A stretch of DNA of 64,000 bases, from assembly GCA_037447605.1 (NCBI GenBank), contig CM074805.1, forward strand, positions 4,435,361 through 4,499,360. Direction: 5' to 3'. Both the position numbers and the translations under genes were made by a program. Shown here in pieces: positions 55,341 through 63,546 of this stretch; positions within the stretch are counted from its first letter, which is position 1, and every line of letters begins with the position of its first letter. Origin of the DNA: Zygnema circumcarinatum SAG 698-1b (taxonomy: Eukaryota > Plantae > Zygnematophyceae). Below the pieces are notes generated by a model. That model was not told the DNA's origin. It did not search any database and was given only the letters and a program-made list of their open reading frames with translations.

Positions 55341-58300
55341 CCAATGCGCTGATGGAACACTTGATCCCGCAAAAGTCAGTGGGAAAATTCTTGTCTGTGA
55401 TTCGGTTTCGAGCACTTTGCAGCAAGGATACACTGCGAAGCAGGCGGGGGCAGTTGGCATCATCCTCATAGGATCGGTGAAAGTGGAATATCATGTTCTT
55501 CCAGCCATTCACATTTCTTCTACGAGTGTGAGAACCTATGCAACGACCGTTACGTAAGTGATGCAGCTGATTTACTTTCACTTTTTTGGTTAAGCTATTA
55601 TGAAAATTCTAGCACACCCTAGTTCCTTCCAGTTTTTTTTTTAACTCCGGTGGACTCCATGGCCTTTATTTTGCTGTCATTGTGTTCCCTTAGCGGTTGT
55701 GGTGTTTTATTGTGAATTCCCACGTAATGATAATGTCATGACGTGGTACTGACGTTTGTTCGCCGAGTGAACATCCTGAAACTGCCTTGCGCCGTCAATT
55801 TTATTTTTTTCGCTTCATGAGTCGACTGTGCATCGTAGCTGACGCGATAGTCTGGTTGATGCCAGAAATGCAACTGCACGCATAACTGAAATCACCGTGC
55901 AAACGGGATCTCCGCCATATGACCCACCGGCAATAGCTTACTTCTCATCAAGAGGCCCAAATCCTCTCATCGACAATATGAAGGTACACTTGATTCACTG
56001 CAAAAATCTGCTATCCCTCCTTAAAATCATGTGCTCCATTCAGTGGTTGTTGATGTGCACAACACCTTCTCTTGTCTGTTCAACTTCTTCCCTTATTTTG
56101 AAGATTTCAGGGTGCAGGCTCCTTCCTGGCTTGTTTGGCCTTTCTTCCAGGCCAATGGCTGTCGACTTGCGAATCTTTTGGTTCTTACGATGTGGTTGTG
56201 ATGGTTAGTGATGCGTCTTGTGTTGTATGTGTTGTTTGAGAGTCTAGGAGTTCTAGCGGCCGTACAGATGTGTGGTCGATGTACGAATACTGTACGGGTT
56301 AAATATACGGAGAACAGAGAGGACCACATTTGTGAGGGAATTCGAGATTATGTCAGACTTAAAAATCGTCAGTAGGTCGTTCGTAAGTTTTACACCAGAA
56401 CGAGTACTCCGGTGACATCGCGGCCATGCGTAACTTCTGTTCTAGTAACTCTTTTCGTAAGATTTTGCTAAGTCTGACAACCCCTATTGTACGAGGACGA
56501 CGCGAAGCGGGAAGGCGAAGCGTCGCAAGAAGATGAAGGGTACGCAGAGGAGAGTTCTAGAGACAGAGTCTGAGAGCAAGAAGAGAAGGCAGAGAAGAAA
56601 GAAGCTGAGAAGCAGAGGAATTGAGAGAAGGATCAAGTGAAATTGCATGAAGGCCTTTGAAGAGAGTTGAGAGATGTATTGATGCCTTTGCTTGTGTGTA
56701 TACGATCGAGTGGGACTGAGAAATGTTTTCATCATGAGTTTGCTGGAAGTGAAAGAGTAACACTTCCATCACAATGGTCTGCAGTGCTGATCCGTGGTCC
56801 GGTATGTAAGAACCGTGTTATCTCTATTACACCATATGGCGTAATGAATGTTTTAGTTGACGCATTCCTCAAGGTGTCGTCTTCTAACAGAACATGCCGC
56901 AGCATAACGTAGTGATAATGCTACATGCCGTCGCCTGGCACAAGCACAAGGCTTTTTATTTATTGGCTCTATGTTTCTGTTATTTACGCGCGAGCTGCAG
57001 CCCGACGTTGCGGCACCAGGATCGCATGTGTTTGCTTCATACATTCCTCGACGAGTCGCGACGGACCTTTCTGTGAGCGTAGATCCGCGAACCACCACGT
57101 GGGCATTCCTGTCGGGCACATCGATGGCAACTCCGCACGTGGCTGGAGTGGCCTTATTGATCCGCTCACTGCGGCCCACTTGGTCTCCTTCAGCTGTGTA
57201 CTCGGCAATCTCGACTACTGGTAAAACAAAGGAACCCCACCTGACTGGCAGTCTACTGTAATGAAACACTGTACAATATGACGAGAAGTTCTGTACAACA
57301 CGGCTAATAAGCGATGGCTAGAGAGGGCTGTTTGAGATGGGCGAAGGAATAGTCTGTTAATGTTCAACAAGACTCCCAAATTTGTTGGAAAGTCTGCTGT
57401 GTATTTCAACCACCAGAGGCAGAGGCAGAATCAAAGTCAGCATTTCATGATCTCTTGTTTTAGCGTGGTGTGGTGCCTGCAGCGGCTGCAATGACTGGGA
57501 ACATCAACGATTTTGGCAGCGGTCTTGTTCGTCCCAATCTTGCGGCAGACCCGGGGCTCGTGTACGAAACAGGACCATGCGATTATGCCCTTCACTTGTG
57601 TTCTTTCTACGGTAGTAGTACGGTGTTCAGTTATACCGGCTGTTACTGTCCTTCCACTTTCCAGCCGTTTGACTACAATGCCCCTTCCCTCATGATGACT
57701 GGTGTTACCAGCACCGGATTCACCACTGTCCGTCGCGTCACAAATGTGGGCCCCGCTGTGTCAACCTACACAGTGGCAATAAACCAGCCAAGCGGAGCTA
57801 TTGTGACTATCTCCCCGGCTATCCTCTCATTTAATGCAACCAACCAAGTGCTAAATTTTACTATTGCTGTTGTGGGCATCGCAAACACAACGGATTTCTC
57901 CACTGGTGAGTTAATAGTGTGCCCTCTGAGGGATATGACGCGGCCCAGAGAGCTTGTCAATTCCTTTCTGCAGTCTTAGCTCTGGTAGTTGGTCGTGGAT
58001 GAAAGAAATGTGAAATTGAACATTCGTCAAAGCGACTTATGTGGGTTCTGGTTTTTTTCCTTTGATTTCTCCAGGGAACTATGCCATGGGGCAGTGGAAT
58101 TGGACATCAGCAGACGGCAAGTATGTTGTCAAAAGTCCTATCATGGTGAACATTGTGGACATTCTGAGAGTACCTCCTCCTCCCCCTCCTCCTCCAAGTC
58201 CACCGAGTCCTCCTCCTTCTCCTCCTGCTCCTCCTTCCATCACACGTGTGGATTTGCTGCCATACGGCTCAGCGGCAGGGGATGTGACCATGCCACGTGG

Positions 58301-61300: not shown

Positions 61301-63546
61301 CCGCATGGCGTCGGATGTGAGAGGGGCGTTTCCAAGCAGCTCGGAGGCCCAAGCCTTCCAACCCGACGGAGGGCTCGTGGCGTCCTGGATCGATGTTGGA
61401 TACTACAAGTGAGTGACGACAACCTGACATGTAGACATTGGACATGCTTTGTCGTCCATTGAGATTGGAAAAAGCGCATTAAACTTTACTGATGGTCAAG
61501 TTGCATATCTCAAATCATCTGTACGCGTTTTTTCCTTTTGCAGCGGAGTTGATAAGCTGAACACCTTTCAAGTATGGCTGGCATGGAGCTCGAACCTCCT
61601 TTTGCCGTTGACATATTGTTGTTTGCTCTACCCGGAGGGTGGATTGCAATGGCTATTTCCAACCAGTACGTTTCCTACCATCCATGATGAGAAAGTTTCA
61701 ATCTTCAGCGTCGATTGGTACAACAGGCTTTGGTCGCTCTTTGATGATTTTGATGTATAGCAGCAACATGCGGCTGAAATATATTGAATAATGGGTGTAA
61801 CTGAGCATGCCAATCGTAAAAACGTCAGCTCTCTTGTTCGTAAGTTTGACACCAAAACAAGTATTCTAAAGACATCGCTATCATCCTGCTGCAGAGTATT
61901 TCCGGAATTTTTTTTTTTGTCAATGTTTAACCTTTCTCGCTGCTTTAGGCAGACTTGATAGGTTTCGGAATTCATCCTTGGGGATATGCTTCTGTACTTG
62001 CCAGGACGGAACAATTTTTTGGCATTTTCTTGCAAAACACATGGGATATATAGCTTTGCGGTGTAGAGGGCTTTTCTTAGCAATCATATCGGGAAAATGC
62101 AGGTGGGGTTTATGCCCAAGGAGGATATGACGCTGGAAACGGAGTGAACTACTACAATCTGCCTGGATCAAGGACAGCGAACTTAGCGAACCTGCAATAC
62201 ACATCGAATGTGAACATTCCCGGAAAGTGGTGCTTCAAACTTTCCACATCAGGTGACGAGAACAACCTGAATAGAACAACCTGAATATGAGTCGCCTTTG
62301 CAGGTTAAATATTTATCCTTAAGTCTGCTTTTTGGGAAGCAGTCACTATTTGAAGTCTGTCCGAATCAATCAAACGTTGGTTTGTGATCTTATCCTTTTG
62401 CAGTTGTTTCCCCGTCTCCTTCACCACCACCATCATCACCACCACGATCGCCACCATCACCACCACCATCATCACCACCACCATCGCCACCATCACCACC
62501 ACCATCATCCACCATCACCACCACCCACCACCACCATCACCACCACCACCACCACCATCACCACCACCACCATCACCACCACCATCACCACCATCACCAC
62601 CACCACCATCACCACCACCATCACCACCATCACCACCACCACCACCACCCACCATCACCACCACCATCACCACCACCACCATCACCACCACCATTGCCAC
62701 CATCACCACCACCACCATCACCACCACCATTGCCACCATCACCACCACCATCACCACCACCACCACCACCACCACCATCATCACCACCACCACCATCGCC
62801 ACCACCACCATCACCACCACCACCATCACCACCACCACCACCATCACCACCACCATTTTCACCACCACCATTATCACCATCACCACCACCATCATCACCT
62901 CCACCATCGCCACCAGCACCAACTCCTCCTCGTCTTCCTCCGCCTCCTCGTTCTCCTCATCCTCCTCGATCTCCACCTCCTCCTCCTCGATCTCCACCTC
63001 CGCCTCCTCGATCTCCACCTCCTCCTCGTCCTCTCCCTCCTCCTCCTCGATCTCCACCTCCTCCTCGTCCTCTCCCTCCTCCTCCTCGATCTCCACCTCC
63101 TCCTCGTCCTCTCCCTCCTCCTCCTCTGTCTCCACCTCCTCCTCGTCCTCTCCCTCCTCCTCCTCGATCTCCACCTCCTCCTCGTCCTCTCCCTCCTCCT
63201 CCTCGGTCTCCACCTCCTCCTCGTCCACTCCCACCTCCTCCTCGGTCTCCACCTCCTCCTCGTCCTGTCCCTCCCCCTCCTCGGTCCCCACCTCCTCCTC
63301 GTCCTCTCCCTCCTCCTCCTCGATCTCCACCTCCACTTCCTCCTCCTCGAAGTCCGCCTCGAAGCCCCCCCCCTCCAAGGTCACCTCCATTCCGACCTCC
63401 ACCTCCATCTCCGCCTCCATCTCCACCTCCACCTCCATCTCCATCTCCTCCTCCATCTCCACCTCCACCTTCACCTCCATCTCCATCTCCGCCTCCATCT
63501 CCACCTCCACCTTCACCTCCATCGCCATCTCCTCAAGCTCAACCAG
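55341..63546 (+). CDS. Subtilisin-like serine protease (S8/PA/Fn3) fused to two NIDO-like domains and an extensin-like region; 5' end in the gap, 3' end probably beyond the last exon called
   Basis: Fifteen phase-consistent exons: 55341-55553, 55866-55983, 57001-57220, 57483-57905, 58075-58408, 58586-58659, 58941-59121, 59560-59678, 60097-60264, 60424-60667, 60885-60967, 61228-61408, 61544-61665, 62103-62252 and 62404-63546. Subtilase motifs: [67 protein letters not shown]. Confidence 0.88.
58245..60250 (+). other. NIDO-like domain 1 (nidogen/tectorin type)
   Basis: DLLPYG..AGD...DD..S..I.L...FF.....FVNTNG.VTF; ILAPFWSDI; G.V.YR; LVASW..V.YY; NTFQV.L; GGLQW; [13 protein letters not shown]; [12 protein letters not shown]. 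Confidence 0.75.
60507..62252 (+). other. NIDO-like domain 2
   Basis: Same motif series and same intron positions and phases as domain 1 ([57 protein letters not shown]). Confidence 0.75.
62404..63546 (+). repeat. Extensin/HRGP-like Ser-Pro(n) coding repeat exon
   Basis: [10 protein letters not shown] and ([13 protein letters not shown])n repeats; 1143-nt exon with phase 1 at both ends. Confidence 0.85.

Follow-up and report, generated by a model that had tools for sequence, protein, structure and literature searches.

Exon structure and domain content of the locus

The stretch of DNA analysed here (hereafter the window) comprises 64,000 nucleotides of Zygnema circumcarinatum SAG 698-1b (assembly GCA_037447605.1, contig CM074805.1, positions 4,435,361 to 4,499,360 of the forward strand) and carries at 55341-63551 of its plus strand a gene of 15 exons, in which the C-terminal part of a plant-type subtilase is followed in the same reading frame by two NIDO domains and a Ser-Pro-rich tail. 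The gene model was rebuilt from the raw sequence by locating canonical splice sites and then testing the phase: all introns have GT..AG borders, the phase is kept from the first exon to the last and 1258 codons are free of stops up to the stop codon at 63549-63551. The original prediction had proposed 15 phase-consistent exons running through NIDO-1, a second Pro linker, NIDO-2 and a Ser-Pro exon, and this chain was recovered in full. All exons lie on one unbroken 8.2 kb stretch downstream of an assembly gap. The introns ahead of exons 5, 10 and 15 are of phase 1, and exons 10-14, carrying the second NIDO domain, therefore form a symmetrical 1-1 module. Two variants of the model were discarded. 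Starting exon 4 from the first AG (position 57464) broke the frame, whereas the start at 57483 kept it, restored the conserved TTA after the S8 helix and was seen in RNA. An extra exon past 63546, joined from the putative donor CAG/GTTAGT to the sole plausible acceptor at 63709, would run into a stop after no more than one codon, and the protein end is therefore the same either way.

Pfam profiles were run on the exon translations one exon at a time, and the protease half was further aligned by tblastn to P0003 (Logan SRR8128904, transcript contig L001), its closest relative among the best 150 matches of the profile search described below, with 51% identity and collinear with exons 1-5 across the 4/5 junction. 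Exon 1 (55341-55553) encodes the PA domain inserted in S8 (PF02225, 5.6e-8; collinear with P0003 residues 21-85), exon 2 (55866-55983) an S8 segment up to the region of the FSSRGPN motif (P0003 residues 97-142), exon 3 (57001-57220) the S8 C-lobe with the catalytic-serine motif GTSMATPH (Peptidase_S8, PF00082, positions 203-272 of 288, 1.6e-12) and exon 4 (57483-57905) the end of S8 together with the first ~72 of the 99 fn3_6 positions (PF17766, 6e-14). Thus, the GTSMxxPH serine motif, the PA insertion and the C-terminal fn3_6 domain characteristic of plant-type subtilases (S8A, SBT) are all present, and the five S8/fn3 exons give 355 open codons with an intact Ser motif and canonical splice sites.

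The fn3_6 domain is completed only by exon 5 (58075-58408), which contains its last strands (58075-58163), a Pro linker of 25 residues (linker 1, ~58168-58239) and the N-terminal part of NIDO-1. The first 29 codons of this exon align to the fn3 end of P0003 (residues 358-386, 52% identity, E 2e-6) and also to residues 746-773 of the subtilase P0033, and the exon then runs on without a stop into the linker and NIDO. The earlier proposal of a single exon reading from the fn3_6 end via the Pro linker into a NIDO start is hence borne out by both the translation and the P0003 alignment. If exon 4 is read through unspliced, 25 unrelated codons follow up to a stop and the last fn3 strands are lost. 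As the fn3 end, the linker and the NIDO start share one exon and the exon 4 read-through stops early, the locus has no way of encoding a normal subtilase that does not run on into the linker and NIDO.

NIDO-1 is encoded by exons 5-9 and NIDO-2 by exons 10-14, five exons each. The remainder of NIDO-1 after the fusion exon lies on exons 6-9 (58586-58659, 58941-59121, 59560-59678 and 60097-60264), while Pro linker 2 and NIDO-2 occupy exons 10-14 (60424-60667, 60885-60967, 61228-61408, 61544-61665 and 62103-62252). The NIDO profile (PF06119, SM00539) was matched in collinear pieces on consecutive exons. In NIDO-1 the pieces on exons 6-9 covered profile positions 17-39, 46-92, 98-129 and 141-184 of 186 with 15.5, 21.5, 28.1 and 39.7 bits, respectively, and in NIDO-2 those on exons 12-14 covered positions 46-92, 99-128 and 140-185 with 20.6, 24.0 and 42.4 bits, which gives sums of ~105 and ~87 bits; the Pfam cut-off of 25 bits was passed by three exons singly. 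In tblastn both spliced domains aligned over residues 9-230 to nine intronless bacterial open reading frames (ORFs) with E values from 1e-9 to 1e-23, and these ORFs score 130-142 bits against PF06119. Since proteins with such strong profile scores align over the whole range, the N-terminal part ahead of the Pfam core is homologous as well. All the domain matches expected from the original prediction (PA, Peptidase_S8, fn3_6 and two NIDO) were therefore found by Pfam per exon, and the Ser-Pro tail by its composition.

The two NIDO domains share 72% amino acid identity. At the DNA level the exon pair 7/12 (58941-59121 and 61228-61408) is 95% identical, against 64-79% for each of the other four, and the introns are unalignable. 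Because one pair is so much more alike than the others, and the introns have diverged beyond alignment, the pattern suggests an old duplication of the cassette with a local gene-conversion patch at exon pair 7/12. Structural searches contributed little: the AlphaFold model of a bacterial NIDO homologue was poor (8-row alignment, mean pLDDT 59) and Foldseek against the PDB gave no match at E ≤ 0.001. Single NIDO exons compared with PDB sequences produced spurious repeat-protein matches only, and a 55-residue exon compared with the ESM Atlas met with weak resemblances to jelly-roll domains (MAM, CBM), which stayed under the confidence threshold and were set aside.

Exon 15 (62404-63551) encodes the tail and the stop. 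The tail comprises 382 residues, 59% Pro and 15% Ser, with 37 Ser-Pro(3+) motifs, and the exon contains ~11 copies of a 39-nucleotide unit. The region ~62400-63550 is open in all three frames, and the open frame is therefore no evidence in itself; only the phase-1 splice from exon 14 determines that the Ser-Pro frame is the one used. In the spliced frame the first 36 and the last 300 tail residues are Ser-Pro-rich. Inside the exon, single-C insertions near 62510, 62525 and 62648 shift the (CCA)n tract from the Pro register through Thr into His and then back. No Pfam match, including to extensin, was obtained for the tail. Of the extensin stalk proposed originally, the repeated Ser-Pro(3-5) glycomodules stand, but the Tyr-based cross-linking motifs of classical land-plant extensins are absent. 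Because these motifs (YXY, VYK) and a Pfam extensin match are lacking, the tail is, judged by its sequence, called extensin-like, i.e., of the hydroxyproline-rich glycoprotein (HRGP) type, C-terminal and free, and not a cross-linking extensin. The protein end as read from the sequence has no hydrophobic segment and hence no sign of a membrane or glycosylphosphatidylinositol (GPI) anchor.

At its 5' side the gene is incomplete. In tblastn with full-length subtilases, the subtilase part present in the window was the C-terminal two-thirds only, collinear with P0003 residues 21-386. The 100-N assembly gap lies at 55162-55261, ending 80 bases upstream of exon 1, and would account for the absence of the N-terminal residues from the model. 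The locus would then be seen as its 3' three-quarters, with the assembly breaking inside the gene, and the missing 5' exons would lie in this gap or on another contig. Runs of 10 N, a gap mark of another kind, are present at 8735-8744 and 43859-43868.

Transcripts across the exon joints

The RNA evidence consisted of contigs from two RNA-type runs (X1 and X2) under the same organism label. Ten GT..AG joints were present in these contigs (57220/57483, 58408/58586, 58659/58941, 59121/59560, 59678/60097, 60264/60424, 60667/60885, 60967/61228, 61408/61544 and 61665/62103), covering intron 3/4 and the nine introns that separate exons 5 to 14, so that these joints are transcribed in this organism. 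Two further joins are indicated by loose contig ends: the one upstream of 56999 equals the end of exon 2, fitting the exon 2/3 join, and those past 62252 are near-identical to the start of exon 15 in the Ser-Pro frame, fitting the exon 14/15 join. Of the two junctions singled out in the original prediction, 58408/58586 was found as a GT..AG joint, and in both runs, but 57905/58075 has indirect RNA support only, from a contig whose match to the genome ends at 57904. The contig in question matches the genome perfectly at 57715-57904, stops at the exon 4 donor and has 33 further letters beyond it, which fit the exon 4/5 joint without proving it.

The depth of X1 was similar on the S8 exons (34-54) and on exon 5 (33-81), with 41.5 and 45.7 on the two flanks of the Pro linker, while X2 had zero depth on exons 3-4 and was high from exon 5 onward. 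Not all contigs carry the letters of the window. The codon changes in the contig covering exon 3 and most of exon 4 in X1 (see below) comprised 7 synonymous and 5 non-synonymous ones, counting variants further on, and many X2 contigs differed at 3-7% of letters; many other contigs matched perfectly. The variant contigs may represent a near-identical expressed paralogue or a gene-conversion mosaic. Because variant letters occur on the S8 exons, the joints are proven for the gene family in this organism and not strictly for this locus. Three joints cross between the cassettes, linking exon 7 to exon 13 (59121 to 61545), exon 11 back to exon 7 (60967 to 58941) and exon 12 back to exon 8 (61408 to 59560). 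Exon pair 7/12, with its 95% identity, is expected to cause such joints in short-word (de Bruijn) contigs; alternatively, the joints could come from a paralogue with more cassettes. Together, the X2 variants and the cross-cassette joints point either to cross-joins at the repeated exons or to the expression of paralogues that differ in cassette number.

Relation to known subtilases and NIDO proteins

The combination of S8 with NIDO and a Pro-rich part was not found described in the literature or in the public protein sets searched, whereby "not found" should not be read as "non-existent". In full-text searches, NIDO occurred together with subtilase or Peptidase_S8 in one paper only, the Zygnema genome paper, which mentions the two separately; its text-format supplements contain neither NIDO nor Peptidase_S8 (PMC11096116). 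According to the same paper, filamentous Zygnema and algae outside the Phragmoplastophyta have NIDO, whereas three unicellular Zygnematophyceae and the land plants lack it. What appears to be new here is the undescribed set of C-terminal modules on a plant-type subtilase, the presence of NIDO in Zygnema being already known (PMC11096116).

When 1.84 billion representatives, a set that does not include the proteins of this organism, were searched exhaustively with exon 4 as the profile query, 1194 matches were obtained, of which the best 150 were examined. None of these 150 had a NIDO match and the median number of residues after fn3_6 was ~0, in agreement with the earlier statement that plant S8A subtilases normally end at the Fn3 domain. 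Among the top matches, the long proteins were tandem subtilases that had been merged or, in the case of P0001, a junk repeat protein, none of them with NIDO; of the few long tails, only that of P0003 did not come from such a merger. PF06119 was likewise found in none of the 120 best relatives of P0003, all of which are ordinary SBTs. Exon 5 compared with a 5.8-billion protein set and with metagenome contigs produced nothing, a result of little weight, since a length filter applied and this organism is not in the sets. The partners of NIDO in the ESM Atlas, queried with a bacterial NIDO, were PEP-CTERM, dockerin, RTX repeats, type IX secretion system (T9SS) tails, AMOP-VWD and D8C; no Peptidase_S8 was among them, which is a lead only, covering clusters of at least 50 members. 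The earlier suggestion that the architecture has not been described thus held in the literature, in the 150 representatives, in the 120 relatives of P0003 and in the Atlas partner sets.

The land-plant subtilases (SBT1/SBT5, S8A) have the same PA domain, S8 C-lobe with GTSMxxPH and fn3_6, and are 38-45% identical over the common part. In contrast to the Zygnema gene, they stop at fn3_6 and have no NIDO, as seen in both the 150 representatives and the 120 relatives of P0003. P0003 itself has a Pro-rich tail of ~90 residues after fn3_6 and a hydrophobic end, which by inspection resembles a membrane or GPI-type signal, and no NIDO. C-terminal tethering extensions therefore exist in this subtilase subfamily. 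The transcript contig of P0003 (3797 bases) holds a 397-residue ORF with I9 and S8 followed after 20 bases by a 478-residue ORF, suggesting a frameshift or a stop in that assembly.

The animal NIDO proteins (nidogen-1/2, SNED1, alpha-tectorin, mucin-4, Drosophila mesh and Caenorhabditis elegans DEX-1) carry the same PF06119 domain and are secreted matrix proteins, and DEX-1 has two NIDO copies, as the Zygnema gene does. Their NIDO domains are combined with EGF, AMOP, VWD and ZP modules, and not with a protease or a hydroxyproline-rich rod. The bacterial homologues come from metagenome contigs (for example, the ORFs L002:1550-2785, L004:8085-9287 and L008:9392-10651 among contigs L002-L010) and are intronless PEP-CTERM proteins of ~400 residues with a full-length NIDO behind a signal peptide, 30-35% identical to the algal domains over residues 9-230; they have no protease and exosortase-type anchoring instead of a Pro-rich tail. 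As the algal NIDO aligns to such secreted proteins, NIDO can be regarded as a general cell-surface module. The original description of NIDO as best known from animal matrix proteins needs widening, since the domain also occurs in bacterial PEP-CTERM surface proteins and has been published for Zygnema (PMC11096116).

Proteases with comparable extensions are known from other groups. In the Gram-positive wall-anchored S8 proteinases (PrtP, C5a peptidase), PA and Fn3-type domains accompany S8 and a Pro-rich segment then spans the wall, and the volvocine matrix metalloproteases, which belong to another protease class, have hydroxyproline-rich domains. PrtP and C5a peptidase are anchored by an LPXTG sortase mechanism, and neither these nor the volvocine metalloproteases have NIDO. 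The likeness to the Zygnema gene would be one of analogy, the extension not being homologous.

Interpretation and alternative explanations

We estimate at roughly 0.65 the probability that the locus is a real, spliced plant-type subtilase gene, C-terminally extended by two NIDO cassettes and an HRGP-type tail, with a product that is likely a secreted, matrix-held protease. As a family, plant SBTs are serine proteases that are secreted to the apoplast and activated through their prodomain, and the Ser-Pro(n) tracts in wall proteins of the green lineage are hydroxylated and arabinosylated into stiff rods. The gene would have arisen by exon shuffling, which added two five-exon, phase-1-flanked NIDO cassettes and a Ser-Pro(n) tail in frame after fn3_6, the fusion having probably occurred by recombination of a subtilase gene with a NIDO-HRGP gene, at Pro-coding repeats that lay in the tail of the former. 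Its product would be a secreted, catalytically active serine protease fixed in the cell wall, matrix or mucilage, in which the NIDO domains would bind the matrix or a surface and the Pro-rich tail would be a glycosylated rod in the wall, either non-covalently entangled or linked through its glycans. Such tethering would confine proteolysis to one place in the matrix and might serve in wall remodelling or filament adhesion; the role in conjugation named in the original prediction would be equally conjectural.

Several observations weigh against this reading. On the protease side, no I9, Asp or His exons were found anywhere in the 64-kb window by tblastn with full-length subtilases, and ~400 N-terminal residues, including the signal peptide, the I9 prodomain and the S8 Asp/His/Asn, lie outside the assembled gene (the estimate comes from the two ORFs of the P0003 transcript contig). 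On the transcript side, the exon 4/5 joint 57905/58075 was absent among the RNA joints listed; no RNA contig bridged the Pro linker at 58168-58239, because reads are cut there as at a repeat; and one contig with 11 differences in 484 bases accounted for the whole X1 depth on exon 3 and, up to 57712, on exon 4. As for the extensions, the tail is devoid of Tyr, Cys and Lys, which makes a covalent extensin-type cross-linking unlikely, and it includes 41 consecutive His residues (62526-62648) that may be either real or the product of indel errors in a low-complexity tract. Finally, even the animal NIDO domains lack a clearly assigned function (bioRxiv 10.1101/2020.07.27.223107).

The same facts can be read as a decaying copy, or as a partial duplicate of an S8-NIDO gene nearby that has lost its 5' part, in which case the S8 RNA would come from a near-identical paralogue and at most the NIDO and Pro-rich part would be expressed from the locus. 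The window without N-terminal S8 exons, the unrelated same-strand gene ending ~290 bases before the gap, the origin of the X1 depth up to 57712 from the variant contig and the X2 depth rising from nil on exons 3-4 to high values from exon 5 would all suit such a copy. Decay, however, is not what the 355 open S8/fn3 codons with the intact Ser motif and canonical splice sites look like, and a run of 100 N is the usual mark of a contig join of unspecified size, so that the missing exons may simply be unassembled. Furthermore, the perfectly matching contig leaves the genome exactly at the exon 4 donor, and since rarer variants are dropped by contigs, the absence of the window letters is no proof of silence. 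We therefore consider a truncated or decaying copy unlikely.

Two other explanations concern the integrity of the model itself. An ordinary subtilase ending near fn3 and an independent NIDO-extensin gene might have been merged wrongly, and the fact that no single RNA contig spans the Pro linker would agree with this; but the contig breaks are explained by the repeat nature of the linker, the X1 depth is continuous on its either side, and the fn3_6 end, the linker and the NIDO start lie within one exon that leaves no stop, splice site or intergenic space between them, which makes a merger of two genes highly improbable. Slightly less improbable, although still very doubtful, is an assembly artefact, i.e., a chimeric join or collapsed paralogues giving a mosaic locus. 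The gene does adjoin a scaffold gap, its RNA contigs mix perfect and variant segments, there are odd joints between the cassettes and three register shifts occur in the low-complexity exon 15. Nevertheless, all 15 exons lie within the single unbroken stretch, the unalignable introns of the cassettes show that no repeat has been collapsed, and the cross-cassette joints are what de Bruijn contigs would give at exon pair 7/12.

With the gene taken as a genuine extended subtilase, its interest lies in the following. The plant subtilase family is large, and its members, processing proteases resident in the wall, nearly always end at fn3_6; a subtilase with matrix modules and a hydroxyproline-rich tail would show a soluble apoplastic protease turned into a positioned one, and a protease would join the proteins known to have taken up NIDO. 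A lineage-specific shuffling of exons for extracellular modules may also bear on the evolution of multicellular filaments and matrices in a close algal relative of land plants. A wider and quite tentative idea is that the phase-1 NIDO cassette is mobile and has spread among proteases, receptor kinases and lectin mosaics, in all of which it would dock the protein to the matrix; the S8-NIDO-HRGP proteins would then be proteases that reside in the matrix and shape cell-cell adhesion or wall remodelling. If that were true, the green lineage would possess a matrix toolkit that shares both the NIDO module and the principle of exon shuffling with the animal matrisome, and the NIDO ligand would become tractable in a simple organism.

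Two features upstream of the gap are added here. On the plus strand, 52106-52530 and 54214-54873 contain two-exon-like ORF pairs coding for similar acidic proteins with YDYP, AELNDREL and LPEEME stretches, an apparent tandem gene duplicate. On the minus strand, long ORFs with poly-Pro and SS(L/R)LPPP repeats are present at 50829-51661, accompanied by an extreme GC skew of 0.75 at 51000-51499, and possibly belong to another gene for a proline-rich wall protein or a formin-like protein.

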